DNA of 64,000 bases from Lepidodermella squamata (taxonomy: Eukaryota > Animalia > Gastrotricha): NCBI GenBank assembly GCA_047495785.1, contig JBLDXI010000042.1, positions 2,914,001-2,978,000 on the forward strand, given 5' to 3'. Position 1 is the first letter of the stretch, and each line of letters starts with the position of its first letter. The notes under the pieces were generated by a model. That model saw only the letters and a list, made by a program, of their open reading frames with translations, ran no database searches and was not told the origin of the DNA. Shown here piece after piece: positions 6,347 through 38,086 of this stretch. The translations under genes were made by a program, and so were the position numbers.

Positions 6347-7921
6347 ATGGAGGCACATCTTGATTGTCCCGAATTAAAATGCCGCGGTGGATGTGGTTTT
6401 TATGGCAACCCAAATTGGGAAGGCTATTGTTCGATGTGTAGAAAGAAGTTTCTCGCCAACGCTACTACCCCTGTTACCGACGAATACAATGTAGATGATC
6501 GAATGCGCGCTCCCTCTTTTTCTATCAAAGCGAATTCGACTCCTCCTGGGTCTCCTGCGATGGCACGAGCTGACTCTTCTCGATTCGCACGAGAGACTGC
6601 ATCGATGGCTGCAACGCTGAAAAAGACTTTTAGTCAATCTGGTGATACGTCGAAGGAGGCATCTGGTAGAGCGTCGCCTACTCTCCGACCGAAGTCTGCA
6701 GATAAATTTTCCACCATGCTCCGAGCACTTCCGCGGCCAGTGAGCACTGAGCTCGAAAATACCGTTAAGCACTTCCTTCACAAGCTGCACTCGCGAACAT
6801 TTGCTTCAATTGACGAGCTTTCAGATTTCGTGCAGAAGTTTTACGTCAGACTTGAGGAAAAGTTGAACAAAAACAGTGTTTACCTTGCATTGCCTAGTCA
6901 GGTTCGTGAGGACTTGTGGGATGAAGTTGAGGCTCATGTCTGCACTCGTTTACACAAAACGGTTTTCGCACATTTGCAAGACGAGGAAGCCGACTTGGCC
7001 TTGCATAATAAATTGCGATCGCTTTTGAAAGAAGTAACTCCGATTGATTTGGAACTTCCACCAGCTTTTGCTGACAGTGACGATTCACAGCCTGAAAATG
7101 ACGATAACATGAAACATTTATTAGACGACGCTTTCCTTGCTATCATCGATATGACCACGAAGGTGACGCCGCAAGAAATACTTTCGTGTCTTTCAGCGTG
7201 TTGCACGGCACTGTTTAGTGCGTTGAGAGCGGCGCTGCCTAGTCCGCCATCTGCAGATGACTTTCTACCCGCACTAATTTATTGTGTTATACGGACGAAT
7301 CCTCCTCAAATTCACTCGACAATCGCCTACGTTGAACGGTTTGCACTACCTAGGCGTATTTTGGACGGTGAAGCCGCTTATTACTTCACTAATTTGTGCT
7401 GCGCTGTGCGGTATCTGGACAGCACAGACGCCGCGTCGATCAAATCAAAAAGCAAAAAGTCACAAGCAGCTGACGAAGCCGATGCAAAAGAAGCTGCCGA
7501 TAAAAATTGCAGTGTTGCCGCAGTCAAAGCAGAGCGTCGTCTGAGTATTTTAACAGCCAAGGCTCAGGATGAGTTATCAAAACGACTAGAAGATTTTGAA
7601 TCAAGTATGTCGCAACTTGCTGGTAAAATCAGCGAAGAAGCTCGAGGATTAACGCAAAAAATTCAAGCTGCCTGTGAAGAGGCAAATAACGCGATCGAGA
7701 CGCAGTTGTTTATCGATTTTAGCGATCCTCCCCCTGCTCCTCCTAAACCGGTTGAACTTAAATTATTCGCGTTGGGAACGATGGACGCCGAAGGTATCGA
7801 ACAATTGAAAACTACTCTTGTCAAATCAGAAGCGACCCCTGAAACGAGCAGTGAACCGCCGCAACCACTTTTGATCGATTTCGAAGCCGAGTTGCCGGCG
7901 AAACCGTCTCCTTCATCTTAG
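6347..7921 (+). CDS. RABGEF1: Rab5 GDP/GTP exchange factor (Rabex-5): A20 zinc finger + helical bundle + VPS9 domain
   Basis: N-terminal CRGGCGFYGNPNWEGYCSMC (A20 ZnF). VPS9 motifs SADDFLPALIYCVIRTNPP and GEAAYYFTNLCCAV. Uninterrupted CDS. Confidence 0.93.
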   Translation: MEAHLDCPELKCRGGCGFYGNPNWEGYCSMCRKKFLANATTPVTDEYNVDDRMRAPSFSIKANSTPPGSPAMARADSSRFARETASMAATLKKTFSQSGDTSKEASGRASPTLRPKSADKFSTMLRALPRPVSTELENTVKHFLHKLHSRTFASIDELSDFVQKFYVRLEEKLNKNSVYLALPSQVREDLWDEVEAHVCTRLHKTVFAHLQDEEADLALHNKLRSLLKEVTPIDLELPPAFADSDDSQPENDDNMKHLLDDAFLAIIDMTTKVTPQEILSCLSACCTALFSALRAALPSPPSADDFLPALIYCVIRTNPPQIHSTIAYVERFALPRRILDGEAAYYFTNLCCAVRYLDSTDAASIKSKSKKSQAADEADAKEAADKNCSVAAVKAERRLSILTAKAQDELSKRLEDFESSMSQLAGKISEEARGLTQKIQAACEEANNAIETQLFIDFSDPPPAPPKPVELKLFALGTMDAEGIEQLKTTLVKSEATPETSSEPPQPLLIDFEAELPAKPSPSS

Positions 7922-8308
7922 AGGAACTCACCAAGTCTTTGATAAAAAAAACTATTCTAGATAGATGAAAAGCGCACACAATTTTTTATTATGTATCATA
8001 TCAATGTGGTGAACAAAGACGCGCAGACTAATGGATGTGATTTTTTGTTGATTTATTATTATTTTGCTTCATTGTATGCGAAGAAATTTGACGGGAAATC
8101 AATCTTTGATATTGTTCAACTATAAGTGATTCGACTATAGACCTATGTATCTATCCAGTGTTTGGTGGACACATTAATCATCTATATAAATATAATTTGC
8201 AAAAAATCGATGGTCGCTGCGTTTTTTGATGGACGAGTAATTATTATTAAAACTTCGGAGCTATTTTTAAAATTAATTTCTTAATGTGTTCTTGTAGATT
8301 TTTGTTTC

Positions 8309-9115
8309 ATGTTGAAATCCGCGAATCCATTTCTGTTGCTGAGGCGCTTCAGTGCTCGTGAGCGAAAACCGCCTCCGCTTTCTTTTCCCGCCGTAGCCCC
8401 GCCGGATTGGGCTAAACCAATTTTGGACTCGGACAAACCGACGTCGGAGTGGCAGAAAACTGGGACTGGCGAGGCGCCTCACGCCTTGTACGCTGTCACG
8501 CGCTTGAAAACGACGTTCGGCCGGCCGTGGTGGGAGAAGAAAATCATAAAAGAATTCGGGTTAGACGGCGGGCAGGAGTTTGTCATCGTCAAAAATACGC
8601 CGGCAACGTGCGAAAAACTTGCTCAAGTGCAACACCTCGTCAAGATTATGCCAGTCAAATTTCCCAACGGACTGCCGAAAAGCCCGGAGGATTTCAAGTA
8701 TTGCCATTTGAAGCACAATGGCGAGTTCGTGGTCCGCCAAAAACTCGACTTGGCCGCCGATCAACTTGTCCCATTCAGCCCGGAACAAGAATCTAAGCTG
8801 CTGGATCGGAAATATTTGCGGGCTTTCAATAAAAAGCGATATCTTGACCATCGTTATTTGGAGGAGCATCATCAAGAACATCACGTTTATCGGCGGAATC
8901 AGGATGGCCAGGAGTACCGTTATAAGGACCTGCATGCGGACTGGCGGAAATCGAATGGAGTCACTGATCCGACGTTCAACGCGGTTGAGCCGCGTGGTGC
9001 TACGAAAGGCGTTGTTCGTGATATTAGAAACTGGTTCAACTCGCGGGAGAGCGACCCGGTCTTCCAGAAGGTGGTTGAAAAAGTCGAGAAGACTCTGCCG
9101 CCACCTCGCTTCTAG
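8309..9115 (+). CDS. MRPL30: Mitochondrial ribosomal protein uL30m, C-terminally extended
   Basis: Basic transit-like N-terminus. LYAVTRLKTTFGRPWWEKKIIKEFGL...IVKNTPATCEKLAQVQHLVKIMPVKFPNGLP matches the metazoan MRPL30 core. Confidence 0.85.
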   Translation: MLKSANPFLLLRRFSARERKPPPLSFPAVAPPDWAKPILDSDKPTSEWQKTGTGEAPHALYAVTRLKTTFGRPWWEKKIIKEFGLDGGQEFVIVKNTPATCEKLAQVQHLVKIMPVKFPNGLPKSPEDFKYCHLKHNGEFVVRQKLDLAADQLVPFSPEQESKLLDRKYLRAFNKKRYLDHRYLEEHHQEHHVYRRNQDGQEYRYKDLHADWRKSNGVTDPTFNAVEPRGATKGVVRDIRNWFNSRESDPVFQKVVEKVEKTLPPPRF

Positions 9116-9834
9116 CTCAAATGAAAACTTAGTTGTGATTCTGAAAAAAATCGAGAATTTTTATTAAAACGATGTGCCTGAAACTATGCGTTTTTAAACC
9201 TTAAAAAAAATCGAAAATTGAAACGATGATAAACCACGCTGTTTCCCCGAGGTCCCAGGTTCTATTTATCTATACTAATATTAAATTAGGCGCTTTTTAA
9301 CGTCAATTAAAGTTCCGCTGAGGTTAGAAAAAAACATGAAAAAATCGTTGTGCTCCATTCATTAATGTTGTTGTAGATATTGCTGCGTCATCGCTTACTG
9401 TCTCATATTTGGGGTTAACGTTCTATTATCATGGCGTGGCGTGGTCGCGTGCCGACTCATAAAACGCCACGCCAGTAAAAGATCTAGAAAACTGGTATTT
9501 TGCTGAGATTTGTAATGGAAAACAAATAGCTTAAGATGGGGTAAATGTTTCGGATCAAATGTTTCGATTTATAAGCCTAATTTCGAATTTAAGGGTTCTT
9601 AATTTAAATTAAGGTGGAATTTTGTTGCTCCGGATTTGAAAAAATTCCGCCATTTTTTTATGAAGGGGCTTATTAAATATGAATATGATGAAGGAGATGA
9701 ATTCTTGATGTTTGAAGTCCAATCTCGGAAAAGCAATCTAATTTCAATAATCAAGAATGAGGCTTTTATTAAGTTGGCTCTAAATTTTCGATTATTTTCA
9801 ATTTTTAGATCTTTAAAATTATCATCGTGGTATA

Positions 9835-12800
9835 ATGGTTCTCTTCTCAGCCGCCCCACGTATCCGGATCGATCTCGTCCGTCTGTTCGCCTCCAGCTCA
9901 GCCCCGGCAAAGCGTGTCATCCGCCGGTTGCTGATCGCCAACCGCGGTGAAATAGCCATCCGCGTCATCAAAACCGCCCGCCGTCTCGGCATTCGAACCA
10001 TCGCTGTTTATTCGGAAGCCGATGCCAAGTCTCTGCACACGCAGTCGGCCGATGAAGCCTACTGCATCGGGCCGCCGGCGCCGCGGGAAAGCTACCTTAA
10101 ACAGCAAAAGCTGATCGATGTGTGTAAAAACAGCGGCGCTGAGGCTGTTCACCCTGGCTACGGATTTTTGTCGGAAAACGCGGAATTCAGCGATTTGTGC
10201 AAGGCGAATAACGTGATTTTCGTCGGACCGCCTGCTCAGGCTATGAGAGATATGGGTCTGAAGTCGCTGTCGAAGCGAATTATGGAAAACGCAAAAGTCC
10301 CGGTTATTCCCGGTTACCATGGCGACGACCAAAGCGACGCGCGTCTGACTACAGAGGCCGATAAAATCGGCTACCCGGTTATGATCAAAGCCATCCGAGG
10401 CGGTGGTGGGAAGGGTATGAGAATCGCCATGACGAAGGCTGAATTCGCCGGCCAACTCGAGTCGGCCCGGCGTGAGGCGACTAACTCGTTCGGTAACGAT
10501 GAAATGCTACTCGAGCGTTACATTGAACGACCCCGCCACGTCGAGGTTCAAGTTTTCGGCGACCAGCATGGTAATTACGTGTATCTCTGGGAGCGAGATT
10601 GCTCAGTTCAAAGGCGGCATCAGAAAATTATTGAGGAGGCCCCGGCGCCCGGGTTGTCACCCGAGACCCGAAAGGCGCTGGGTGAGGCTGCCTGCGCCGC
10701 CGCCCGGGCTGTTGGCTACGTCGGGGCTGGTACGGTTGAGTTCATCCTCGACGCTGATCTGAAGTCGTTCTACTTCATGGAGATGAACACGCGGTTGCAG
10801 GTCGAGCACCCGGTTACTGAAATGATTGTCAACCAGGATTTGGTCGAGTGGCAGTTGCGAGTCGCCCAGGGCGAAAAACTGCCCCTGGTTCAGAGCGCGA
10901 TCCCGTTTGACGGGCACGGTTTCGAGGCGCGCATCTACGCTGAAGATACTGATGCGAATTTCATGCCGGCGCCTGGGCCGCTTCGCCATCTGGCCTACCC
11001 GAAGAATCACGTGTCTTTCACGTGCCTCGGCGTTGACAAATCGGCGGTTGCTCGCGTCGATAGCGGCGTGCGCCACGGCGATGAAGTTTCCGTTCATTAC
11101 GACCCGATGATCGCTAAGTGAGTTTTCAAAACCGGGTATTTTGTTTCACGCTCCAGATAATCAAATTGTATTTCGCATGAATGATCTTGTGGTATGTAGC
11201 CTGAATACATCTCATAGAGGGGGGTAAAAAAATACATGGGACGTGAATATTTTCGATTTTTTTTCAACGCTATTGTGACTCGTGATTGTTTATTACATCC
11301 GGCTTGAGTAAAACTACCGTTGCCATGTGAAATGCGAGGAAAAATTAAATCGAAACTGATTTGAAAATTGATTGAAATTTGTTGTAATTCCTTGGTCGCA
11401 AACCTCACGAAATTATTCGAAGCTGATTTCAAATACAGATTTTCTTTAAGCGGAACCAACTTTACGGTCAGCGGAATTTAATTCGAAGTGTGCTGAATGT
11501 TGATTTTCAAAAAAGTAATTCAAAAGGGTAAGAATTTGAGGCAATGTATGATTTATAATGTCTTGCACAGAATTTTACGGTGAATTAATTAAAATTAATT
11601 AATTCAGATTTACGTTGGTCAATAATAACATTTTTGTAAAATCTGAAAAGTGGTCTCAGGCTCGATAGATAATCTAAATTAGGTTCCGTTCGGAGGACCC
11701 TTTCATATAGCATCATTTGGGGGCTTTGAAACTGCATGAAAAATGTGCATAGATATTGTGCATTAGTTGGTTAATTGGACTTGGGGGATATATTTCTGAC
11801 CCTGGCAAAATTAGAGAAGGTTTTTTTGCGTGGAAACGGCCGATTTCTAACTTCAGCAATTCCTCAGATTTATTTATTTAAGAGCAGAAATCCCAAAGTT
11901 GAGAGCTCAGAAAATAAAGTTTGTTTGAAGTAAAAAACATATAGTCACGTCAATTCGGTCCGTTCCAGAACAATATCCAACAAAAGATTCAACAGTTACA
12001 ATTTTTTCAGTTTAGGTTTATAGATAAAAAATAGTTATAAACAAGTTGATGGGAAGAACAGGCATCGTCACAAATTTGAAGCCACAATCACATCTTGGTG
12101 GTAGGTTAATGTAGTTCATAATGTTGATGAGACCAGAAAACAACGAAAGATAAGCTTACATCCAAATTTTCACCCAAAATATATATGTAGAAGTATCGTT
12201 TCCACCTAAATTTAGCCGTATAAGAAAGAAAGAAATAATTGATTTTATGCAGGAGTGATAAATTCATTAGCAAGTTGTATCCTGCATATATTCAGTGCTA
12301 GAAATTTTTCAACAGAATTTAATTTCAGAAAATTCTTCTCGGTATTATTTTTGCGAATCGATGGTCATAAGAGTCATAACTCTGCACAATTTATCAGAAA
12401 CTGTAATTGAAAGGGTGTAATATTTGAATTGGATAAACTCCAAATGCTTTATTTTATCCACCAAGTTATTACTGCAATAATTTGAGACATGGGCCAAAAA
12501 AGGTGCCCAGCAGCTGTTTCATGCCGTCACATGATAAGGAGATGTGCGCAATGATGAACCAGCTGTCGCTCTCCTCAAAAGTGATGAAAATTAAAAAGTG
12601 GCCCATTGCTCGCTTAACCTTGAAAAATTACGCCTTTTCTATTGCGTATTACTAATTGAATAGTTCGATTTAATTTTCAATAGACTCGTCGTATGGGGCC
12701 CGGATCGCGTTTCGGCACTTCGCCGCCTGGTCGCCGCACTGCAAAATACGCACATTGTCGGCCTGCCAACTAACATCAATTTCTTGCTGAAATTGGCCAC

Positions 12801-15805: not shown

Positions 15806-17967
15806 ATGCTAAAATATTTTATTCTGGCCTCAATTTTCACTCAATCGGTATTTTCTCAGCAAACCACAACCGCAGTTGGTTCAACTGCCTCGACTACGGC
15901 GCTGGACGTTCAAGCGTTTCGATGCAACTTCGACACCGATTTTTGCGACCTTGTCCAGGACAAAGCTGATGACGTCTTCGATTGGATGCGGGCATCAGGC
16001 CGCCTGCCTCACATCGACACTGGGCCGCAATTTGGCGACCACACAAGCGGCGGGGGCTATTACGCGGTTATCAATGCTTCAAACCCGCGTAAACCCGGCG
16101 ATTTAGCCCGGCTGCTGTCTCCGACGTACAAATTTAGCTCACCCTGCGCGGCTATCACGCTTTACTACTACGCTTACGGCCTCAATCTTGGATCATTGAC
16201 AATTCGAGTGGGTGTTCCGAGCCCGCAGCCGAAGTACTCGGACTGGCTAATAATTTTTCAAAAGAGCGGGGCGGATTCAACGCGCGTTTGGCGGCGATAC
16301 AGGACAGTAGTTCTAACCGTGTTTTCGTCAACACCCAAAAGTGAACAACCGTTCATGCTTGCGTTTGAAGGAGTCGTTGGTAACGGCTATCAGGGCGCAT
16401 ATGCTATCGACGATTTGGACGTTCGAGCCTTAGCATGTCCGCAGAACATCACGATGCAGAAATTGCGAGAAGGCTGGGCTTTGATGTATGACACAACTGA
16501 TGAAGATGTCGCAGAGGGCAATAACTATCGGGCAAACATCATGGGCCGGCAGCTGGGGTCAACCCCATCTGGCGGAAAAACCACAACGACCCCCGCGAAG
16601 AAAGACGATGACTTCCCGCCCTGGGCTATCGCTCTAATTGTAATCGCCAGTTTTTTCGCAGTGTCCACTGCAATTTTCTTGACCATTCGATTTGTGCGCA
16701 AGCGGAAAAAGGATAAAACTACTCAAAAGTACGCTAAATCTCAAGTTTTAAGGCGGAGTTGTTAATATATATATTTTTCAGGTACGCTTCATCATCTAGG
16801 CCTGCGACGAATGGCCACGCACCTTATGCTGGCTCTTCCTCCTTCAGCGAATCTCCGTCAGGCAACGGGGACATGCGGCCTGTCAGCACAATCAGCCGCC
16901 GGAGTGCTTTGGACAGCGATAGCTCTTACGAAATGCCAACGAAAGCCAGGCCTATCAGCGTCCCGGTGGAGCATCAAGGTAAAAGCGTGCGATTCATGCC
17001 TGATTACGAGACCGAGTATGGCTTTGGGCTGAAACTCGGCGTTCCGGCCAAGTTGGAACCTGTACCGAAAGGCCTAGCGAAAGAAGCGGATAAAATCGAT
17101 AAGAAAGCCGAGAAGCAGGTTAGAAATTCTCGGCAAAAACTAACAGCCCGGCAAAGGCGACGCTTAAGGATAGCGGCGAAAATGGCAGCCAAGGCAAAGA
17201 AAGAAGAAGCGAAGAATCAGAAACTACAACAAGACAAGGAAACGTTCTCCGTCTTTGGCAATAGCGAAAATTTCCCGCATGAAGCTGGCAAGAAGAAGCC
17301 GATTCCAATGCCACCCCCTCATGTCATTGAGATGCTGAGAAAAATGCGATCTCCAAATAACCCACTCAACAGAACTGATCGGCGAGTTAGTAGAACTAGC
17401 GGCGAAATCAGTGAAGTTAAGCCGGAAGGTCCCCGTGGCAACAGTGTGGTTGCAGTGATTGAGCCGAATCGTATTGTGGCGAATCAAGGGAAGCACCACG
17501 ACGACATGGGCATGGAAGACGTTAGCGATGGAGATTATGCTGATGAAGATGATGACTTGGACGTGCAAGACGGCTCGGATGGAAGTGATGCAGTTTCAGA
17601 AATCGATGAAATCATCGAACACTGGGAGAAAATGCCACTTCCAGCAGCGCCCATGCGGAAGGCTACTAGCAGTGGAAAGCTTCCAAGCCTAGCTCCAATC
17701 ACATCCCCTCCTTCATTTAATAACAGTAACAAACAAACTGCTGTAGTTGAGATACAGCAAGTTCAGTCTTCTGCAAATGCAAGACGAAATCCTGTAACTG
17801 TGATAAATCATTCAGCGCCTAATGCTCAAACCAATCATTCGACTCCAGCAGTCTTCACAATTGGATCGGATGAGCCAACTTCAAGTTCGAGTAATTATTC
17901 AAAACCCCTTCCCGCACCTGGATTATACGACGGCCTCAGTGATGATGACGATAACACAAAATGTTAG
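15806..17967 (+). CDS. Type I membrane protein MAM-1: signal peptide, MAM domain, TM helix, long disordered cytoplasmic tail
   Basis: MAM motifs CNFDTDFC, GPQFGDHTSGGGYY, ARLLSP, YYYAYG, AIDD..V. TM WAIALIVIASFFAVSTAIFLTI followed by RKRKK. Phase-2 intron 16729-16781 joins the two ORFs. Confidence 0.88.
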
Positions 17968-24609: not shown

Positions 24610-26239
24610 ATGGAGCGAAAAATATCCCTCTTGTGGTATTTTCTGATATCAGGAATAACAGGTTAGCTGCGGAGGTTTGTAACAGTGAGATTTTTAATGT
24701 CAAATACTTATTCCAGCTCAAACACCGAACTCGCCGCAGATTGTTACATATGACAGAAGTGAGTCAAACTCAATGCTTGTCAATTACTCCTAAAAATCTT
24801 GTCTTTTAGCTACTAAATGGCCATACATTACTTTGGAGCCAAGAGGTCCAGATTACTTTGATGATTTGAATCCGTACCGAACGAAGATCACAACAGTAAG
24901 CACGACTACACCCCGGCCAACAGGTTCGACCTATCCCCCAGCTGCCGATGTCTATCAATGTGATTTCGATGTCGGCATATGTGGTATGATTCATGACCCC
25001 ACGGCTTCGTTCAATTGGACTCGCCGAGATGGAAAAAGTCCACATGCCTACACTGGTCCGCAAATCGGAGATCATACGACAACGAAAGGATTTTATGTCT
25101 TCATCATCTGCTCAGATCCTCGAGTCACCGGAATGCAAGCTCGTTTGATCACACCTGAGCTGGTCACCACAACCGGATGTGCTAATATTTCGTTTTGGTA
25201 CAACGCCTATGGAGCTCATTTGGGTCGTTTAACTGTAAAAACCTTTGAGACAACAAACCCTGGCAGCGTGAGCAACGTTTTTGAAATCAGCGGCCCAGAT
25301 GACAATCAAGATTGGCGATTTGCAAGTGTTGTAGTTCCTGCATTGAAATACAAAATCATATTCGAGGGCGTAGTTGGAACTGGTTATATGGGCAACTATG
25401 GTCTGGATGACATTCTTGTTCGATCCGCACCTTGCCCCGCTACGACACCATCGCTCAATGGCTCAGCTCAAGTGTTCATCCCCGGCGACATTACAACACC
25501 TGCGCCAAGTGGCTTGCAAGCTTGGGCTATCACTTTGATCGCAGTGACTATAATCGCAGCCATCGCCGCCGTTGCGCTGGCTGTTTACTTGGTATACCGA
25601 CAAAAGAAACTCCGCCACTTGCGCATGATTGAAGAAAGGGAGGAAGAAGAGCGAAGAAAGCGTGAGATCGAGGAAGATGGGATTATTCACACCGATAGGT
25701 CGTATAGTACCCGAGTCAGGACAGGGAACCCTGGTGTCGATAGGCCGCAAGGCCGGATGCTGCCATCAGCCCAGCGACGTCTTGCGCCTGGTTACGGCGC
25801 TCGTCCAGGCTCCCGCATGGGTTCGGCTTACAACAGAGTGGACATTCCAGCGAGCGCAGTTTCGAAACGAGGTCACTCTCCCTCAGCTCTTGCTCTCCAC
25901 GAATCTGGCCCTGGGAACACAGAGTATGGCTACGACCAGGAGGTTGACAACACTGCTCGATTGAGATCGGCTGCTCGAATCCAAATCAACCTGGGTGAAA
26001 ACGAACAACCACCTGTACCGCAGATCTCGCAACCCGCCCGCCTGCCAACGATTTTTGGAGGCGAAGAATCTCCACCACCCACTCGTAGCGCCAGTCGTAA
26101 AACAGAGATCACAGTAAGTGATGCAAGTCCTATTCCTGATCGTCGGGGAGATATCGGACAGCCAGCAACAATGCGTCCTGATAGTACACCTAAGAGTACA
26201 GCAACAGGCAAGGCTGAAAAGATGCAATGGTACGATTGA
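24610..26239 (+). CDS. Type I membrane protein MAM-2 with an N-terminal TKW...NPYR motif
   Basis: Signal exon 24610-24661 (MERKISLLWYFLISGIT), introns 24662-24716 and 24759-24809. Then TKWPYITLEPRGPDYFDDLNPYR, a MAM domain (CDFDVGIC, GPQIGDHTT..GFY, ARLITP, FWYNAYG, GLDDI), TM WAITLIAVTIIAAIAAVALAVYLVY and a cytoplasmic tail. Confidence 0.88.
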
Positions 26240-26744
26240 ACGGATACTGGGAATACTCGGATTGTATTAAACATTTGTTTCTGTCTTTTATCCTATTTTC
26301 ATGTATCTTCAATTTCATGCATGCTTATTTTCTAATATTCCAGCTCGAAGTTAATCATTTTCTTCATCTGACAAAATCGGTTTTCTCTTGTTTCACATGT
26401 CTATAATAAACTCATATGCATCTTCAAGAAAGATAGTCGAGGTTCAAACCACGCGTCGCTCAGGCGTGTTTACATTCGCAGGTCAGAAAAATAGCGATGA
26501 GATATGGATTTTTGCTTACATTTTTTTGCGCCGACACATGCGTGCAAGTTGGTTCATTAAAGTTTAATAGGAAAAAAAGGAGGTGGAAGCCGAGGCCTGT
26601 TCGCACGGTTGCGTGTCTGCATTGAATAAAAAATTGAGTTGAGGGAATGCAGCAGGCATCCCGTTGTTAGCGACCCGACCGATTTGGGCTTTTAGAGAGA
26701 TCAAGGTCCCACCATCTCTTGATCTCTATGAGACTCTAGAAAAT

Positions 26745-29032
26745 ATGAACACTTTCGTTATTCTTACCCTTATGCTGCATTTAACTGCAGGTAGGAGTTA
26801 CAATGCGTTCCACTGCACTCCTTATGATATAAAATACTCTTTAGGTCAGCAATTGCCCTTGGCTCTATACGATGAGGAAGAAGAAACGCGGACAACGAAA
26901 GAATTGCAGCCAGAAGATCGGGTTCGGGAAAGCTACGTCTACACAGCTCACCCTTACATACCAGTCGTAATTTTGCTGCCACGATCAACCACTCCAACGC
27001 TACCTGGTTCGAAGCCAGTTGTAGTCCAGAGTAATAGCGATGATGACCATGAAACAGGCCAATTAGCTACAGAACGGCCTAGAATACCGCAGCCTGCCAT
27101 TCCTACCTATCGCACGAGGTTTGCAATGCCAACTGCGAAAACAACTCCTACCCCAGCGCCGAAAGTCGTCATGGCAGCGGGTGACCCTGATACCAAACGA
27201 GGCATCGTCATATGTACTTTCGATGATAGTATGTGTGATTTCACCCACGACTCATCTGTTCCAATGAGATGGTCGAGACGCAACATTAAAGCGCCTCCCA
27301 GAACAGGCCCTGAGCGGGACCATACATCTGGGAGTGGGTATTATCTTCTTTTTGATATTCAAAAGAATCCGAAAGGCAACGTGGCTCGTCTCATCAGTCC
27401 TGAATTGTTCACACCCACTGATTGCATTATCATCGAATTCTGGTATTACGCCTACGGCAGTCAGCTTAATCGGCTGACCGTCAAAACAATAACTACAGCA
27501 GATGGAGTTGAAGATTTAACGACAGCTTTCGAGCTCATCGAACCGAAGGAGATTCCAAAAGCCTGGCAACAGGTTCGTGCTACTATGAAGCTGTACGATG
27601 AGCGATATCGAGTAATTTTCGAGGCCGAAGCTGGGGACGGGCCGGAGGGGGATTACGCGATCGACGACGTCACGATCAGGGCAGATGGCTGCCCAGCTGA
27701 AATTACTAGACGACCTTTGGCGAACCGAGCCAGCGCCAGCCCTGATCTACGCCAAGTCGACAAAATGAACTACCGCAATGTTACAACGACTGCGTCACCT
27801 GCTTCTGCAAGCGCACCAGCTTTATCCCGTAAGTTTGAATTTTTGCTAACTGAATTATGAATAGTAACGCCTGAACTATTCCTAACATAACAGCTACTGC
27901 AATAGCTGCAATTGTTATAGTTATAGTCATCATTCTTGTCGCTGCAATCCCTCTGAGTATGTTTCTATGGAAAGTATATGGCCGCAAGAAAAGAGCAGCG
28001 CTGAACGGAGGGTAAATATATATATTTGTATGGCTTTGCAATATAGAGAGAATTTTTTTCAGAGGTCCGAATCACTCTGATCGCAACCGTTCGACACCTT
28101 TGAATGAAATGCCCGATTCTGCCCGAACTGAGAGAGACATTCCAATGACAGAAGCCAATCGAAGTCGTCCCCCAACGGCTGCAGTGGCTGCTAGACCGAG
28201 AAAAGCTGCAACAGCCGTAACTGAGCAAACAAGCGAGATTCAGGGGTATGACCAGGCCGATAACCTTGGCTACTTGAAGCACGCGGAGCAAAATGAAGGT
28301 CAAACACTTGACTCAGCAGAATTAGCTCGGAAGCTAACCGACGTATCGATATCTCTGAAAAACGCGCCGAAATCTGATAACGACCCTGCTAAAGCTTCGG
28401 CTGTCATTGATAAACCAAAGGAAGTCACAGAGGCTTCGGTTGTTGCGAAATTAGATAAATCCTTAGATCGCGTTCTTGGCGACGCTTCGGTAACTTCTAC
28501 CCTCACATCTAGCGGCAGCGGTACTTGGTCAAGTTTCGACGCAAATTTTGCTGTGCCCTCTCCCACCGTCGTTCCCGCGGAATGGGCAGCTTCAACATTC
28601 GATGATAAGATGATTGCACCAAATCCTCACACTTTTGTGCCAATCGATCCGCCAGCTGCGCCGAGCTCTAATACTCCGTTCCACGAAGACCTGACAAAGT
28701 CCAAGGCTGACTTGCACGATGTAGTTTTGAATAAGGACGAAGCTCCCACGGATAATCCGATTGCTTTTGATAATTCGAATTTTTTCGCCGCCCACTCAGC
28801 CAAACCCAGCAAGCCAGTGCAGGAACCGTGGTTTGCCGAGAGCAATAACAGCACCACCATGTACGAATTTCCTAATTATGGCGATTTTCATGCTAGCATG
28901 AGCAGTAATCGGTGGCATTTGAGTAACTTCATGATCAACGAGGAGGAACGGGGCAATCCATCACCTGAGACCCATGACGTTGCGAAAGAAGCAAAACCGC
29001 AGGTGAAATCTTCTAATGAATCGGTGATATAA
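26745..29032 (+). CDS. Type I membrane protein MAM-3
   Basis: Signal MNTFVILTLMLHLTA, Pro/Thr-rich stalk, MAM domain (CTFDDSMC, GPERDHTSGSGYY, ARLISP, FWYYAYG, AIDDV). Intron 27829-27893, TM exon (TAIAAIVIVIVIILVAAIPLSMFLW-KVYGRKKR), intron about 28012-28062, tail to 29032. Confidence 0.86.
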
Positions 29033-29212: not shown

Positions 29213-29467
29213 TTAATGCTTCATTTTTTCCTCCCGAGCCTTCTGACGAAGAGATGATTGGCCGAAAGAACCCCTAGCATTGCTTGGAATCCGCTTGAAA
29301 CGATCTGACGACCATGCGCTGCGATGAACGACCGGGGAAGCGTATTGTCTCAGGTGATTAATCCTGCTCAGAGCTGCATAGTCCTCGCCACTTCTTGCCT
29401 CTGAGTAGACCATGCTAGCAAAGCAGGCAAAAAGAAGTAGGGCAAAAAATAATGCTTTAATTTCCAT
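29213..29467 (-). CDS. Prepropeptide P1
   Basis: Signal MEIKALFFALLLFACFASMVYS. KR site followed by IPSNARGSFGQSSLRQKAREEKMKH. Single exon. Confidence 0.75.
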   Translation of the reverse strand: MEIKALFFALLLFACFASMVYSEARSGEDYAALSRINHLRQYASPVVHRSAWSSDRFKRIPSNARGSFGQSSLRQKAREEKMKH

Positions 29468-30138
29468 TTGCTCCAAAATAAAAGTCGAGAATTAGCAGAT
29501 ATATGAGAGTACGAAATCAAGCGGAATGTCACAATTATCGGGGCAGGATGCTGCTTAAATACTGAAAATCCCCGCCTCTTCCCAAGGGTGCGCAAATCTA
29601 TATAATTAATAGCTTTGTTCTGCGAGTTACATCACTTCCGTTAGTGCTTTCACGGCTAATCCCATATGGAATTGCCTAAGCAAGTGATGAAAATTGCGGA
29701 AATGAAGCTCTGTGTGCCTACAAAACGAAGATTTTACAGTCATACTATACAACAGAGTCTCAAAATCATTATTGCGTCAAAACATCTGATTTGATGGCAT
29801 TCTTATGTATTAAAAGATGACTGAAATCGGAAGCCGGTAAAAGGAGCCTAAAAATTATTAATAGCGCTAAGTATCAAAAGGAATAATTTCAATGGAATAT
29901 ACTCATCGCCGTGGCGCTATACAGCATATTCCACTATTTCCTACGTCAGTTCTAATAAAAGGTTTGCTCTGGAGTATTTGATCCTTTCATAGTAAGTGAG
30001 CGTGACAGATACGGATACGATAAACAGTTTACCTAAGAAGTCGTATCCTTAAAAGCCAACTGCCAGACAGATCTAAAGAACGATACTTCGCTCCTTCTAA
30101 GAAACAGTCTATAGTTGCTTTGCAATTTGCAATTAAGA

Positions 30139-32113
30139 ATGCTTAAGGATTGGAAGCATTGTCTCGATGAAACCGATATCGAAATGGCCGCGACCACCAA
30201 GGTGAGATAAGATACTTTATGGACTATAGTGACTTTCTCCTTGTATATATCGTCAGCTCCATGCCATGCGTCGATGGTTTGTTACAGGAGCCGTCATAAG
30301 GCGAACGATTTGGGGATTACTAGCTTGCCTCAGCATCGGCTCGTGGATATACGTCATGCGAGAGCGAGTCGCATTTTACCATCTTTACGCTCTTGTTACA
30401 AGCTATTCTGTCGAATATCCGCAGGTATGCTATGAGTTCATACGCTCGCAATAGGTTTTCTATAGCTCAGTAATCTAGAGTGTGCCGTTTCCAGCTGTCA
30501 CCGTGTGCAACATGAATATGTTTACAAGTTCGTCACTTTCTGAGATCGAGAGGAAACTCCTGCGAGATGTTGGAAAATCATTTTTCAATGACCTCAAGCT
30601 CCTCAAATCAAGCTCAATGAGCCAAGAAGGGCTCAACAGATCGGCTTTTCAACTTTACGACGATTACGCGATAAGGGAGGCTAAAATTATCGGAAACTCC
30701 ACCTTTGACCTCGGACATTTTATCGATTCCAAAGGATGGGAAATTTCAGATAACAATTTGATTTGCTCCTTTGCTGGAGAGCCTTGCTATTCTAGCGATT
30801 TTAGCGCAGTGATGACGAGGTATGGTAAATGCTACTCCTTCAATGCCGATAACACTCAAGCACAAATAGTCCCTGGTCGAAGTTCAGGGTTGCGCATCTA
30901 CATCAACGTTGAAGAGGTTATCAATTGAAAGCCAGACAGATAATATAAATGTATTGTATGATAAGGATGAGTATCACGAATTCAACATAATGGGCGAAAT
31001 TCAAGAGGAGGTCGGAGCTATGATCTATGTCCACCATCCTTACGAGCCTCCGAACACTGGTCTTGCGGCTTCGCCTGGTTTCGACATGCTCGTTCCATTG
31101 AAAATGAACATTATGACAACTATCAACACACCGCCTTGGAACAGCTGTGGCGAAGGACCTATCGGCCCCTATAAGGAATATTCGATTCAGGGATGTCAGG
31201 CACTATGCGAGTCAAATTACTACGCAGCTGAAGATTTTTGCACTTGTAGGCCATGGTATCTACCTGCAGTGGAAGAAGGAAACTCAACTTTGCCTGTTTG
31301 TTCAATTTCCAAGGGCATTTTTTGCGCTAATTGGGTCATAAGTACACTCTCTATTACGATGTTTGCATTTTTTAATTACCTTTTTCATTAGACGGTAATC
31401 ACCACGATCATTGTCGATCTAGGTGCGAAGAAGCATGTTCAGCTTTTAGCTATGAATTTAGCTCAAGCTATTCGAAAATGGTCGGTGTTCCGATTCCAGC
31501 ACACAACTACACAGCACAGTATATTCAAGACAATTGGCTTCGAATTAGTGTTTATTTCGCAGACTTGGTCGTAGATTCAATCGATGCTGACACCGCGATA
31601 ACGATTAGCGGCTTGCTGTCCGATTTCGGAAATTTCATGTCGATGTTTCTCGGCTTCTCCGTGGTAACCATGTTCGACCTTGTGGAGTATCCTGTGCTTA
31701 AGATATATCGACAATGCATAAGGCCGAGTTATCGAAGAGCAAGAGCCTATAATGCAAAAGTGAGGCGGAGAAGGGATCCTGTTTACACTGCAAATGAACC
31801 TGCTGATAAGGTAACAGTCGATTCTTTTACGAAGAATGTATGGAACAAAGGTTATAGAGCGTACAGCGTGAGTTCTAATTTTGATCACCAAAAACAACCA
31901 ATAAATCGTTTTTATTAGTGGTTGGACAAATATGCGCATTTCAGCTACTTCGGACGATCCAAGCCTAAAGTGTTAAAAGAAACGCATGGCGCAAGAGGGA
32001 AACCCGCCAGCAATGTCTCGGTTGATTCTGCCATGCCCCGATACCGCAGTTGGTCGATAAGCAGTTGGGCTAAACAACTAACAGACAGAAAAGTAATTCT
32101 CAAACGTTTCTGA
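30139..32113 (+). CDS. DEG/ENaC (ASIC-like) ion channel subunit 1
   Basis: Spliced MLKDWKHCLDETDIEMAATTK|LHAMRRWF, TM1, FPAVTVCNMN, YGKCYSFN, GL.IYINVE, Cys-rich thumb, TM2 GLLSDFGNFMSMFLGFSVVTMFDLVEY. Five short introns. Confidence 0.93.
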
Positions 32114-32226
32114 GCAATTTCATTGAATGATTAACGTTTCACTTTTATTTCTGCAAAACTCTTTTGAAATGTAGTAGCTGTGAAGTGACAAGGTAACAGC
32201 GGGGTTGTGGTTTACAAGAATATGAA

Positions 32227-32616
32227 TCATCTATTTACCTTCCCATTTAAGATATCACGAGCTAGGATCTGAGCCCATAGGTAAAAAGTAGCATTGTTCT
32301 CGCAGATTTGCTTCGAGCCGATTCGCTCAACACATTTGCGCATGCGAATTTTTTGAATGATCCGCTCGCACATCTTGTCAAGGAGATTGTTAAACCTGGC
32401 CTCGCCCATTTTTTCTCGTTCACTCGTTGCGTAGCGTGTTTCGATTATTGTCCGACAAAGCGCAATATCTTTCAAGTCAGTTGTTCCTGACGCTTGGCTC
32501 GAGGCTAGATGATCATCTTGAGAAACTGGCTGGCCGGGTGTTTGATTGGGGTCAACAGCTGATGAGTAAGCTAAGAACAATGATAGAGCAATCAACCGGG
32601 AATTTTCAAGCAGCAT
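32227..32616 (-). CDS. Secreted two-cysteine family member C (apparently intronless, 2 extra Cys)
   Basis: Signal MLLENSRLIALSLFLAYSSA. C-terminus IRMRKCVERIGSKQICENNATFYLWAQILARDILNG. Confidence 0.85.
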   Translation of the reverse strand: MLLENSRLIALSLFLAYSSAVDPNQTPGQPVSQDDHLASSQASGTTDLKDIALCRTIIETRYATSEREKMGEARFNNLLDKMCERIIQKIRMRKCVERIGSKQICENNATFYLWAQILARDILNGKVNR

Positions 32617-33147
32617 CTTTCGGAATAAAAACGGCCTATAATGGACAAAAGTATCATGATTAACGTTTAATGGTCCAATGAACGGTGTATGCACTTAGGC
32701 GATGGCAAGCAAATATTTACAGACGGATAAATGAATCAGTTTTGCGGGTTGTGATGCGTACAAATTTTTTCCGGTCATCTCATCGCTATTTGCGAAAAAT
32801 CGAAGCGCCACACGTTTCACTGTGTACCAAACGGACGACACCGTCTTTTATAAATGTATGCAATGTGGGCGTCGATATTTATAGGATTATCATGTTTGTC
32901 TATACTTCACGATACGTAATTCCCTGCTGGGCGCCCACAGCGTCCGAGGTCTTGTAAAGACGGGAAACAGGGCCGGGATCACGCAAAAGTTTAGGACGGA
33001 AACATGAATAGGATGCGAATGTTGCTCCCAAAAGACACCACGATATCAACGTATTGGCAGCCAAGTCAATTTCATAAGAAAGAGAGAGAAAAAAATTGGT
33101 TAATTCTTCGTTAAAAAATCTGCAGTTGCTTCGCTCTTATAAACGAA

Positions 33148-33357
33148 ATGAGAGGCTTTGCTATCAAGGCAACAATTTGGCTGTTGTTTTTGGCGATGGC
33201 TGTTGTGACGATGGTGGAGATGCGCCAAGCACCAGTGAAGCTCGCCTACTTCAGCGATTTCGATGAGCGGAAGACCGCGGGAGAACCTGTGTCAGTCAAA
33301 CGCAGTTTCGGAAAGGCCTGGATGCGTAAAATTGGGCGAGGACACAATGACAATTAG
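33148..33357 (+). CDS. Prepropeptide P2 (predicted SFGKAWMRKI-amide)
   Basis: Signal MRGFAIKATIWLLFLAMAVVTMVEM, spacer, then KR-SFGKAWMRKI-G-R (possible amidation signal). Confidence 0.78.
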   Translation: MRGFAIKATIWLLFLAMAVVTMVEMRQAPVKLAYFSDFDERKTAGEPVSVKRSFGKAWMRKIGRGHNDN

Positions 33358-33905
33358 CTACGATTTTCCAAATGGAATGAGGAAAAACATCTGTAACATT
33401 ATTATGTCATATTAACAATTATTGGAATACACAAAATGATTACGAAACAACTACTCTTCACCTGTGGATCACTCAATTATTCAAAACTCACATTTGCAAT
33501 ACTAATAAACTTTGTTCTCGTTGTGGCTCATTAGTTTTTGATATCGTATACTGCGAAATAATGCCTGTAATTTGTTTTCAAATTGTCCCCAACTCAAAAT
33601 TAAACTGCTTCTCATAACGAGATACGCAAGAACTCACGCTTATATTGGTAAATTACTAAAGCTGGGTTATAATTTTGATTATAGGTCACGAGTTCGGAAT
33701 ATAGGAAGTATAGGAAATTCGAGAATGTTGAGTTTGAATAGCAGATTGTACTGGCTACAGAAATGCCAGATGATTCAATTCTCCGAGGTATCTCGTGACA
33801 CTTTGGTTGTATTATTTCTGACATGTTGTGTTGCACTCTTCTATTGAATTTGAACAAGGCTAAAGGCTACCCATTTCTTTGTTTTTCGATACAAATAGGA
33901 CAATT

Positions 33906-34130
33906 ATGGCATTAAAGCGACTCGAATCGGCTGCTGTCGTTTTAACAGTTATGATCGTCGTGATCTTACTCTGCAGCGAGTTCGTTTCATCTAAGTATGT
34001 CGAAAATGGGGACACCGACCCAAGCGCCCGAATCAGGCTGCAGAAGGTCATTATTCGCGATTCGAAATCCTTCAGAAGCAACCTGATCGACCATCCAACG
34101 GTTTTCACTTGGAGTAAGCCAAAAAATTAG
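33906..34130 (+). CDS. Small secreted peptide precursor P3
   Basis: Hydrophobic signal (AAVVLTVMIVVILLCSEFVSS) and K-SFR motif. No dibasic site in the mature region. Confidence 0.6.
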   Translation: MALKRLESAAVVLTVMIVVILLCSEFVSSKYVENGDTDPSARIRLQKVIIRDSKSFRSNLIDHPTVFTWSKPKN

Positions 34131-34537
34131 TTGCAAGATGAGCAAGGCGCAGCGGAACATTATGAATCATTGGTTTTCGAGAACAAATCTATATCATTTT
34201 ATTTATGCTTTGAGTTCTCCCGCGACGCGGTTTCAATTTTTAAACAGAAAATAAAAGCTTTGACCCCAGCTTTAACCATAGGTACCTATGGTTGCGTATT
34301 AAAAATACGGCTCGCAATCAGATTCAGTGCAATTAATAATGTAGAGGTAGCTACAGCATTAAATCGTTACCATGTATCGGAAATTATTCCGCCCCTTCAC
34401 CATATCCTGAGTGGCACGCGGATTAATTAGATTTTCTGACTGCTTTTGGCGCGACATCTCGAGGGAAAAGCTAGAGGCTAAAACAAGTCATCAGTTTTTC
34501 GATACAACTACATTTTCACAGACTCGTCTATTCAACA

Positions 34538-34744
34538 ATGAAAACTGCTTTGGCTTTGTTTTTGATGGCGATTGTTGTAGCCATCGTCCTAATTTCTTCA
34601 ACATCGGCACAGGAAGAAGCTGTCGACATGGGTTTTTTCGGCCGTGATCTCGAAGACGATGGAGTTTGGGTCGGCCAAAAGCGACGATTCGGTAACTACC
34701 TGGCAATGAAAAGCCTCGACCCTCACGATTCCTCAGAAAAATAA
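34538..34744 (+). CDS. Prepropeptide P4
   Basis: Signal MKTALALFLMAIVVAIVLISSTSA, then QEEAVDMGFF-GR (possible pGlu...FF-amide), an acidic spacer and KR-RFGNYLAMKSLDPHDSSEK. Confidence 0.78.
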   Translation: MKTALALFLMAIVVAIVLISSTSAQEEAVDMGFFGRDLEDDGVWVGQKRRFGNYLAMKSLDPHDSSEK

Positions 34745-34866
34745 GTAACCCCTTGTCGAAAACATGTTCACTATACTCATATACATCTTCATTGTAAAAG
34801 TCAGAGAACATTGTTTAAGAAAGTTATGCATTTATTAAGAAAATTAACAAAATAAATAAATAACGA

Positions 34867-36910
34867 TTATAGGCCTGTTTTAATGTTTCCGAAGAATGAA
34901 GGAGTGTTCCCCTCCCTGTCGGAGAAGCTCATTATCGATACTCGACGGCGCTGGTTTGATTGAGATTGTGACATGTACTTCCGCAATCGCGCTGGCTCCT
35001 TTGTTGGTTTGATTATTTGAGGCTTTTCGCGCTTGAAAAAGCCGAAATTCGAGAAGTCATCGCGGTTCTACAACAAAAAGTGTGGCAGTTACTCATTTCC
35101 CTCAAATTAACTTACTTTTTTATGCATTTGACCTGCTAATGTTTCTTTTGTCCAGATATCTATTGCAGATTTATCATCTACTGATTTGCTGACGGTTACG
35201 ATAGGATCCTTGGGTCGTCTTTTCTTTATCCTCTCGCGAATGGCTTTTGCTTTGCGGTACCCAGGTCTTATGCATTGTCGATAGATTTTAAGAAACGGGT
35301 ATTCTATCAAGTCGAACATCGTTACAACCGAAAAACCGATGAACATCGACATGTAATTTCCAAAATCAGCCAATAAGCCATCAATCGTGAATCCGACACC
35401 TGAGTCAATCGTGTTGACAGTGAAACTCGGGAAATGAACGCTAATCTCCACCCAATTGTTGTCAATGTAATCCTGTGATAATTTTTCGCCTTCGAGTAAA
35501 TATTGGCCCGGATTAGGCACGCCCACGAGTTTTGCATAGCTCGTTGCAAAGTCGTATTGATTAGTTGAGCAAGCCTCATCACATTGACAGGCGCTGAGGA
35601 ATTTGTCAGCTGAAAAACTATGCTACTCAAGAGAAATGTTGTCCCAGACAAAAACTTACTGATGACCCAATTGGAGCAAAAAATGGTCCTAGAAACAGAA
35701 CATGGTTGTAGCGAACTGCCAGCTTCTTCGGGCAGAAACCATGGCCGGCAACCACATTGCGGATGAGATGCGTAGGCTCTAACTTGACACAATGCCAAAC
35801 AGCCAGTTACTGAGTATTGATCGTAAGGTCCCAACGGGCCTTCACCACAAGTGTTCCAAGGCTCCCTGTTGATTGTAGTCATAGCTGTAAGCTTCAAGGG
35901 GATGTTCATGTCAAATCCAGGCATCGCCGCCAAGCCATTTTTTAAATTAGGCGGCTCGTATTGCTGATGAATCAAAACTTTAGCCCCTGTGGCGATTTGC
36001 AGCTGACCAACAATATCGTATTTAAAATAATCGCTCTAAAAATGTTGCCGTCATTGAAGCGGAAATAAAAACAATTACTGAGCTATTACCTCTTCGATAT
36101 CGATGAAAAGTCGCAGTCCGTCAAGGCGGCCTGGCACATTTTGAACAAGAGAGCCATTCCCGTTGAATGAATAGCAAACCCCGTACTTCGTGAGGGTTAC
36201 GTTGAACTCTGAAGTAGAGCAAACTCTCGAACCATAGAAGCACCTGATTTTCGCATCATCAACGGACCATCCTTTTTCCAGCACAAATTGCTCCACACTG
36301 AAATCTGTTAAAATTTTTGAGGATCGTATAGGAAGTAGATTGGATTAATTTACTAGTATTCACGATAGATTGTTCAATTGCAGAATATTTTTCCAGAAGT
36401 TGTGCAGCAGTGGCGTTGGCGTCTCGACTATTTGACGCGACAAGTTGCATAATTTCTTTATAAAATGGTCCGGAGACATTTTCGAGGAGAGCCCTGTCAC
36501 TAGCGGACAGTTTTGATGCGCTGAGCATATTCAGGTTGCAGATTGTAACGGCAGGGAATGCTACCTCCTACGATAAATTTCGAGAAAGGAATGATATTAT
36601 AATTTAGCTAGAGCAATCTTGATACTCACTTGAGAATAGACAACGGAATAACTAGTTGAAAGACTGTACAAATGGTACAAGGCTACTCGTTCGCTCATCA
36701 AATAAACCCAGGTGGCAATGGCTACACATGCTAAAATGCCCCACAAAGATCTCCTGATAACTGCTCCAGACACAAACCACCTCCTCATTGCGTGGAACTG
36801 AAAAAGGAAATAGTTGGGGTATGTTTAAAGGAAAGAAGCGAAACCTTGGTGGTTGCAGCCATCTCGATGTCGGTCTCATCGAGACAAGTCCTCCAATCTT
36901 TCAGCAGCAT
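34867..36910 (-). CDS. DEG/ENaC ion channel subunit 2 (inverted paralog of subunit 1)
   Basis: MLLKDWRTCLDETDIEMAATTK|FHAMRRWF, FPAVTICNLN, YGVCYSFN, Cys-rich thumb, TM2 GLLADFGNYMSMFIGFSVVTMFDLIEY. The last exon ends ...KTGL-TAA at 34867. Confidence 0.93.
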
Positions 36911-37237
36911 TTCCCTCAGCTGCTAGAGAAAAACCTACCAGTACTCAGGTAGTAAGAAACACGAAATTGCCTGGCTTTCTTGCTGCGTTATAATACTAGA
37001 TGTATGCCGACTGTGTTTTATACATGGAGCTATAAAGCTGTTTATGCCACATTACTACGTGGTCAAAAGTAAGAGCCTCTTGGCACCTGCAAATGCTAAT
37101 AGCTATGTATACGCCACACACATGGGACTAAACAATAGTCATAATTTATTACGGAATTCTATGCTTGGATTATTAAGGTGTGTTAACTCCATTCAGGAGC
37201 AAATTCAACGACTTAATTTAAATAGTCTGAAGATGGT

Positions 37238-37432
37238 TTATTCGGCTGGCTGGCGATTACGGAATCTTTCTCCGAAGGAAATCGGTCGTTTAGCCATGAA
37301 GAATGAATTAATGATTCCTTCGCCGTCTTCTGGACCTTCGCTACGGTCTCCATTTGCTTCAATCATGACGGCTAAGGTGAAAATTGCAGAAAAGCAAAAG
37401 AAAACTTTGAAGAGAAAATTAGAGAAGTTCAT
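37238..37432 (-). CDS. Prepropeptide P5
   Basis: Signal MNFSNFLFKVFFCFSAIFTLAVMIEA, acidic spacer, KR-PISFGERFRNRQPAE. Confidence 0.78.
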   Translation of the reverse strand: MNFSNFLFKVFFCFSAIFTLAVMIEANGDRSEGPEDGEGIINSFFMAKRPISFGERFRNRQPAE

Positions 37433-37819
37433 TTTCCCGTATTTTTTGAGATGTACTGCAAGCTCGATACGAAATTTATTTTCGTTTATAATGTCCGTTA
37501 ATGTCCAACAATAAAACCAACAGCTCTCTAATGTCCGTTTATAATGCCCTACAGCAATAAATATCAATTGGATGCGGAAGTGCGTCAATATAAGATAATT
37601 ATTGGACCGGGACGATTTGCGCATTGGTAAATCAAATTAGAAACTAGCGACTCGGCCTAAATCATTTTGTGGCAAGTGACAAGCTGTCAGCCATCACGAA
37701 CCGGGGTTTTACCATGACGTGCTTGGGAACATCACGGGTGTAGAGAAAAACACGTGTTCACTTGGCAAGAAAAACATCAGGATAAGTTAGGACGCTGGGC
37801 CATAATTTCCGTTTGAAAA

Positions 37820-38086
37820 TCACATGTTAGGAGCGATGTTTTGGGACATTTTGAACCGCCGCTTGTCACCGCCGCCACCGTTGCCTCGGCTTAATTCATA
37901 CAGGAGTGCTAGTTCAGCCTCGCTAGGTCCGTTTGATGCATCGTTATCCGACGTGGCTTCTGGCACAGGCTCGTCGAAACCTTCAGGATTGTAATGATCA
38001 TCTTCGGCAAGAGTGTTCAGGGGCTTCTCTAGCAGAACCATCAAAGCCACAGCAAATGATAAACAAGCAGCAAATGAACCTTTCAT
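37820..38086 (-). CDS. Prepropeptide P6
   Basis: Signal MKGSFAACLSFAVALMVLL, long acidic spacer, KR-RFKMSQNIAPNM. Confidence 0.75.
   Translation of the reverse strand: MKGSFAACLSFAVALMVLLEKPLNTLAEDDHYNPEGFDEPVPEATSDNDASNGPSEAELALLYELSRGNGGGGDKRRFKMSQNIAPNM

Follow-up and report, generated by a model that had tools for sequence, protein, structure and literature searches.

A cluster of channel genes and small peptide-precursor genes was analysed in 64,000 nucleotides (nt) of the genome of the gastrotrich Lepidodermella squamata (contig JBLDXI010000042.1, positions 2,914,001 to 2,978,000). This whole stretch is called the window, and all coordinates refer to it. In a block from 29.2 to 38.1 kb, two genes encoding DEG/ENaC channels (channel 1 and channel 2) are interleaved with six small genes (P1 to P6) and one further gene, C, in the order P1(-), channel 1(+), C(-), P2(+), P3(+), P4(+), channel 2(-), P5(-), P6(-). 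The block is probably a lineage-specific cluster, built by repeated local duplication, in which two orphan channel genes stand beside a family of secreted signalling peptides, coupling between the two being undemonstrated. A probability of roughly 0.6 was assigned to this reading.

The window has the features of a compact eukaryotic genome (GC content ~0.42, introns of 47-62 nt). The gene order and strands that an initial annotation had proposed across ~9 kb were recovered unchanged from 29216 to 38086. P1 and channel 1, described there as head-to-head at ~670 bp, are 671 bp apart from ATG to ATG, and the P5 stop lies ~330 bp from the channel 2 ATG, as had been estimated. Both of the proposed DEG/ENaC genes are open, and their exon open reading frames (ORFs) were matched by the Pfam ASC family (PF00858) with E values from 1e-19 to 6e-8 (32.7-71.3 bits, for a cut-off of 23.6). 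The six supposed peptide-precursor genes are six single ORFs of 64-88 amino acids (aa) with a precursor-like architecture.

The predicted proteins of both channels carry the hallmarks of DEG/ENaC subunits: two transmembrane (TM) segments, the post-TM1 sequence FPAVTVCN or FPAVTICN, a cysteine-rich ectodomain and the thumb cysteines C-x-C-x3-C. When the TM2 exon was compared with solved structures, ASIC1 was the best match (E 6e-12), followed by ASIC5/BASIC (3e-8), ENaC-gamma (3e-4) and FaNaC1 (1e-3). The ectodomain exon matched ASIC1 (3e-14), ASIC5 (1e-11) and ENaC (1e-5), with no FaNaC match among the solved structures. The ASIC1 structure is matched 8-11 orders of magnitude better than FaNaC1 (8on7). 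In an exhaustive search of 1.84 billion representatives, no protein exceeded 48% local identity to the channels. The best matches bearing a name were ASIC/BASIC-like proteins of nemerteans, a brachiopod, amphioxus, a brittle star, a hemichordate and an annelid, with 25-31% full-length identity. A scan of JGI metagenomes with the TM2-exon alignment gave no relatives. The DEG/ENaC tree was made of 74 rows, HyNaC sequences lying outside it. In this tree the channel pair sits on a long branch and joins a group of 29 invertebrate ASIC/BASIC-like rows. Its apparent sister is the metagenomic protein P0060, and because P0060 is only 25-28% identical to the channels, this position is probably due to long-branch attraction.

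Several residues set the pair apart. The His-Gly gating motif before TM1 is near-universal in the superfamily; in both channels it is replaced by His-Ala (LHAM and FHAM, for LHGI in ASIC2), a substitution which is conservative. The selectivity filter in TM2 reads GFS at the position of GAS in ASIC1. Both the His-Ala change (exons 30257-30424 and 36629-36797) and the GFS change (TM2 exons) were kept in the two paralogues. The proton-sensor residues of ASICs were compared at H73, E411 and E416 (rat ASIC1a numbering). At the H73 position (the His of 'YQHVT' in ASIC2), both channels have Leu. The E411 and E416 positions ('FFEALNYE') are Pro and Asn in channel 2, Ala and Asp in channel 1. In ASICs as a whole, H73, D78, E411, E416 and K211 show fair conservation (PMC9949801). 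Because H73, E411 and E416 are replaced, the predicted channels are classified as orphan clade-A DEG/ENaCs, on the ASIC/BASIC/HyNaC side, and not filed as ASICs; they are probably not proton-gated in the manner of ASICs. Such a status is common, most invertebrate DEG/ENaCs being orphans. The pair has the ASC domain, the two TM segments, the FPAVT-x-CN sequence, the cysteine-rich ectodomain and the G-x-S filter in common with the ASIC/BASIC-like channels of annelids, nemerteans and brachiopods. It differs from them by its low identity (25-31%), its long branch, the HA and GFS motifs and the replaced sensor residues.

Expression and polymorphism were examined with two sequencing runs, X1 and X2, over the range from C to P6; P1 and channel 1 lie outside this range. 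Run X1, catalogued as 'RNA?', is similar to SMART complementary DNA (cDNA), its contigs containing the template-switch oligonucleotide, oligo-dT/poly(A) junctions and spliced joints. Variants were counted between the window and runs X1/X2; the counts given are those of the variants listed, 16 less well supported variants having been left out.

In channel 2, the X1 cDNA contigs skip six CT..AC introns and join an open frame of 577 aa running from 36910 to 34867. A TATAAAA sequence is found at ~37021, upstream of the gene and past the P5 poly(A) site, and an AATAAA lies 31 nt past the stop codon. Eleven synonymous and three non-synonymous variants were counted (p ~1e-4); channel 2 is under purifying selection. 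The six-exon model of channel 1 rests on GT..AG sites, on its homology to channel 2 and on the conserved cysteines. Over 552 aligned residues the identity of the two proteins is 51%, and five intron positions are common to their genes. The predicted pair is an old duplication of which both copies are intact. The 49-nt intron 36305-36353 is present in channel 2 only, the channel 1 exon 30479-30916 being continuous at this place, which corresponds to a gain or a loss after the duplication.

The small ORFs are real genes, P1 being judged on its sequence alone. Transcripts, named in the initial annotation as a check on these ORFs, were obtained as complete poly(A) messenger RNAs (mRNAs) for P2 and P5, and cDNA also covers P3, P4 and P6. 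For P2, contigs begin with the template-switch oligonucleotide directly before 33078 and end with poly(A) after 33526, without splicing, and an AATAAA is located 22 nt ahead of the poly(A) site. The P5 transcript is represented by a contig over 37216-37507 and by an oligo-dT primer/poly(A) junction at 37129, with an AATAAA (37152-37147) ~22 nt ahead of it. Two TATAAAC boxes precede P5 at -111 and -58, one of them ~30 nt from the 5' end of the contig. The P5 mRNA is unspliced, as is that of P2, and both the P2 and the P5 ORF open at the first ATG and are the longest ORF of their mRNA. For P4, an AATAAA is located 107 nt past the stop. Given the AATAAA positions of both genes, the 3' ends of P4 and channel 2 converge and probably overlap, and plus-strand RNA is the best interpretation of the cDNA contig over P4. 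For P6, cDNA depth was obtained over 37800-37999.

The variants bear on the coding status of the same ORFs. P3 is under purifying selection: its seven variants are all synonymous in its own frame (p = 7e-5), against at most one in four of the five other frames and five in the fifth. P4 has two synonymous and two non-synonymous variants, the latter in the leader or early pro-region. In P6, variants at 37946 (D>E) and 37976 (synonymous) were read in a cDNA contig. P3, P4 and P6 together have 13 variants, of which 10 are synonymous (p = 1.6e-4). In run X2, P5 contains an in-frame insertion of 3 nt inside its coding sequence (CDS). It was considered that the small ORFs might be chance ORFs of untranslated or non-coding transcripts, only the channels being genes. 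Their short length, their lack of homologues and their mostly non-significant pairwise similarity would fit this idea. It is close to refuted by the complete short mRNAs of P2 and P5 opened at the first ATG, by the restriction of the P3 synonymous pattern to the proposed frame, by the in-frame indel of P5 and by the leader, cleavage site and motif found in all six ORFs.

Other observations were made on the regulatory regions of these genes. Upstream of P5, at 37478-37549, GGACATTATAAACG occurs twice in tandem (repeat D10, with 53 nt between the copies), which gives the two TATA boxes. Run X2 lacks 37489-37528 (40 nt), so that the D10 repeats are fused into a single copy, a length polymorphism of the promoter or 5' untranslated region. 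The P4 and channel 2 stops are 122 nt apart (34744-34870), each AATAAA lying inside the 3' region of the other gene. The two mRNAs would overlap tail-to-tail, with some tens of nt expected, and are a possible natural antisense pair. The 14-mer GTTTTTCGATACAA is common to P3 and P4, 20-50 nt upstream of their ATGs (33870-33905 and 34480-34510), and CAGTTTTTCGCTA, which resembles it, is found ~175 nt upstream of P6 (38250-38275). These sequences may represent a common cis-element or what is left of a duplication.

All six precursors contain a hydrophobic 12-mer within their first 30 residues (mean Kyte-Doolittle 2.4-3.6); on this criterion, hydropathy only, a signal peptide is putative in each. 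The peptide at the C-terminus is preceded by a KR site in P1, P2, P4, P5 and P6 and by SK in P3. The net charge of the spacer varies from +4 to -10, the lowest value being that of the long acidic spacer of P6. The C-terminal tails are 12-25 aa long, hydrophilic and without cysteine in all six cases, with one predicted peptide per precursor. A sequence [S/R]-F-[G/K/R] occurs at most two residues past the cleavage site in P2 to P6. In P1 (FKR site, 25-aa tail containing G-SFG) it comes after seven residues. The strict motif [KR][KR].{0,2}[SR]F[GKR] was found in four of the six ORFs and the loose motif [SR]F[GKR] in all six; for each of them, none of 20,000 shuffles reached that number. Among the 223 ATG-initiated ORFs of 40-200 aa in the 64-kb window, the strict motif is present in four, all of them peptide ORFs of this block. 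Outside the motif, pairwise similarity measured by local alignment against shuffles is mostly not significant (best p = 0.025), and no similarity between the peptide genes is left at the DNA level in the repeat comparison of the window. When 5.8 billion proteins were searched with a profile of the six peptides, none matched at E <= 0.01, and Pfam gave no match either. The amidation signal G-(K/R) was present at none of the six tail ends. The exact sequences of P2, P5, P6 and of a VPS9-domain ORF located elsewhere in the window are not on record in public assemblies. The six predicted peptides are a probable single family, old and fast-evolving, of a previously unseen type.

The reading of the block as a local cluster of orphan channels and signalling peptides is proposed to operate as follows. 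The two channel genes would encode subunits, related by an old duplication, of an orphan DEG/ENaC sodium channel of the ASIC/BASIC/HyNaC side. Each small gene, apparently transcribed separately where its ends were mapped (P2 and P5), would encode a secretory preproprotein of 64-88 aa. Its hydrophobic leader would direct it into the secretory route, and a cleavage of the furin or prohormone-convertase type would follow after the dibasic KR (SK in P3). A linear, cysteine-free, unamidated and hydrophilic peptide of 12-25 residues, with [S/R]-F-[G/K/R] at or near its start, would then be released and serve as a neuropeptide-like or hormone-like signal outside the cell. We infer secretion, cleavage and a signalling role from the architecture of the predicted precursors. 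This architecture (signal peptide, acidic spacer, dibasic site, C-terminal peptide) and the size are those of single-peptide prohormone or neuropeptide precursors. Like the known precursors, the P genes are expressed as small independent mRNAs and form a tandemly duplicated family. They differ from them by the lack of homology to known families and of an amidation signal, their processing and neuronal role being putative.

An anionic pro-piece, a KR site and a cationic tail are also the classic design of antimicrobial-peptide precursors. The P genes, and perhaps C and its paralogue C2, might be abundant secreted effectors made by gland or epidermal cells, for instance antimicrobial or adhesive-gland peptides, unrelated to the channels. 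The pro-regions of P4, P5 and P6 have a net charge of -3 to -10 with tails up to +4, and the P2 tail is amphipathic (hydrophobic moment, muH, 0.76). The cDNA contig depth, a poor measure of abundance, is 57-238 over P5/P6 versus 9-34 over channel 2, and a young, fast-evolving family without homologues would be effector-like. However, five of the six tails are hydrophilic with a muH of 0.26-0.46, the tail charges are just 0 to +4, the peptides contain no cysteines, and the selection acting on P3 is strongly purifying and not diversifying. Such a gland or defence role is judged unlikely, while deserving some weight.

The position on the chromosome is the only connection found between the peptides and the channels. 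No co-duplicated unit of peptide and channel was detected in the window: the inverted repeats (I1-I3) involve channel exons alone, with an inversion axis at ~33500, about which the peptide genes are mirrored neither in position nor in strand. P2, P5 and channel 2 have their own start or TATA box, there are separate poly(A) signals, and the cDNA depth falls to zero from P2 to P3; the operons P6-P5-channel 2 and P2-P3-P4 are therefore disfavoured. A derivation of the peptides from the last exon of the channels (shared 'FSxFG'/'SFF', DNA repeat D2) was also considered and rejected, all 12 pairs having p > 0.1 against shuffles. No P-like ORF was found in the flanks of P0060 (ENA metagenome contigs L003-L006, where Ly6-like cysteine-rich ORFs and a gene for trypsin are located), a comparison that is uninformative because orthology is doubtful. 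L003/L006 correspond to a distant DEG/ENaC gene of an intron-poor metagenomic eukaryote, flanked by three small Ly6/three-finger-like secreted ORFs, rich in cysteine, and a trypsin gene.

These data also bear on the more striking proposal that ligand and receptor genes are linked in this block as one module. Channel 1 and channel 2, as homomers or as a clade-A heteromer, would have the unamidated [S/R]-F-[G/K/R] peptides as their native agonists or modulators, and linkage would be selected for co-inheritance or co-regulation. The channels are orphans without the ASIC proton-sensor residues, and the peptides are real, secretory-looking and restricted to this block of the window, several of them (P1, P4, P5, P6) with Arg-Phe. 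P1 is divergent from channel 1 over 671 bp, and the 3' ends of P4 and channel 2 probably overlap. Clade A includes the peptide-gated HyNaCs as well as ASICs, whose acidic pocket binds peptides (PMC11474038). The HyNaCs are clade-A heteromers of paralogous subunits opened by short secreted peptides (PMC11474038), and the initial annotation had proposed a functional analogy to them for the pair described here. Against this proposal, adjacency is the sole link, the transcription signals are separate and the peptide and channel genes were not duplicated together. The known DEG/ENaC peptide agonists, FMRFamide, Hydra-RFamides and Wamides, are amidated at the C-terminus (PMC11474038), whereas an amidation site is missing from all six tails; the ligands of HyNaC in particular are amidated RFamides, and the peptides here are predicted to be unamidated. 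FaNaC/WaNaC are likewise neuropeptide-gated DEG/ENaCs of protostomes, but they belong to clade B and have amidated ligands, and the channels of the block match ASIC1 better. In a screen of 109 neuropeptides on vertebrate ASIC/BASIC, modulators and no direct agonist were reported (PMC6301962). Finally, other unrelated families (MAM, C/C2, ankyrin/RING) are duplicated in the same region. The module was considered improbable.

Given the MAM ORFs, the C/C2 pair and the ankyrin/RING genes, local duplication of genes for secreted and membrane proteins is the norm here. That the peptide and channel genes are adjacent is most simply explained by co-residence in a duplication-prone region rich in such proteins. 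Functional coupling is possible; nothing past proximity indicates it. In the literature searched, including that on HyNaC, no report linking a peptide-gated channel with its ligand gene was found.

Some points weigh against the preferred reading of a lineage-specific cluster. All six peptide genes of the window are inside the 9 kb that hold both channels, with only C besides. The block is tighter than a loose neighbourhood effect requires, and the arrangement has persisted, since the channel duplication is old. The role of the peptides is predicted and unproven, with neither an amidation site nor homology to known neuropeptides. The leaders are putative signal peptides on hydropathy. The family status depends on the [S/R]-F-[G/K/R] motif, which was defined post hoc from these very sequences. 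P1 and channel 1 are sequence models.

To our knowledge, ion channels gated by peptides fall into just two known groups, FaNaC/WaNaC and HyNaC, and there is almost no molecular neurobiology of Gastrotricha. If the ligand-receptor proposal were true, peptide-gated channels would have arisen independently a third time, and the block would be the first example of such a channel staying together with its ligand genes in a genome. With its two channels and its six short, linear peptides, the locus is a small and concrete test set for the question of the ligand. Even without coupling, it provides an expressed and selected family of peptide precursors without known relatives, together with a divergent ASIC-like pair that lost the proton-sensor residues and gene models for both channels. 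The demonstrated content is ordinary gene-family biology, the striking part being a hypothesis based on proximity. The coordinates of the features are given in Table 1.

Table 1. Genes and transcripts of the 29.2-38.1 kb block (window coordinates)
Feature	Position	Strand	Description
P1	29213..29467 (stop 29213-29215; coding 29216-29467)	-	84-aa prepropeptide-like ORF; basis: sequence
Channel 1	30139..32113	+	571 aa; exons 30139-30201, 30257-30424, 30479-30916, 30966-31341, 31392-31867, 31919-32113
C	32227..32616	-	129 aa, secreted-looking, convergent with channel 1; cDNA contig 32202-32656
P2 mRNA	33078..33526	+	449 nt, unspliced; CDS 33148-33357, 69 aa
P3	33906..34130	+	74-aa prepropeptide-like ORF, SK-SFR site; partly covered by cDNA contigs
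P4	34538..34744	+	68-aa prepropeptide-like ORF, QKR-RFG; cDNA contig 34155-35067
Channel 2	34867..36910	-	577 aa; exons 36910-36845, 36797-36629, 36566-36354, 36304-36090, 36035-35660, 35609-35116, 35067-34867
Channel 2 introns	35068-35115, 35610-35659, 36036-36089, 36305-36353, 36567-36628, 36798-36844	-	cDNA joints
P5 mRNA	37129..37507	-	~379 nt; CDS 37238-37432, 64 aa, AKR-PISFG
P6	37820..38086	-	88-aa prepropeptide-like ORF, acidic spacer, DKR-RFK, 12-aa tail

The neighbourhood of the block was also annotated. C2 (39810-40244, +, 144 aa) is a paralogue of C (BLASTP E = 1e-9). Both proteins are secreted-looking and have in common a C-terminal block K-C...I-C...F-Y-L-W-A...I-x-N-G; neither was matched in Pfam or in the ESM Atlas. 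Upstream of the block, three ORFs with a MAM domain are arranged in tandem (15806-16765, 24833-26239 and 26664-27860) and are apparently single-pass receptors. The last of them may have its cytoplasmic tail in the ORF 28100-29032. Ankyrin/RING genes are found downstream of the block. No Rfam match was obtained in the window. At 6296-11121, a VPS9-domain gene, one gene and the first exon of MCCC1 follow each other in the same order as on scaffold_3832 of ENA ERZ23486764 (L001). The MCCC1 exon is 82% identical to that scaffold, versus 62-70% to many bilaterian phyla. The ERZ23486764 environmental sample contains an unsampled relative of this animal.

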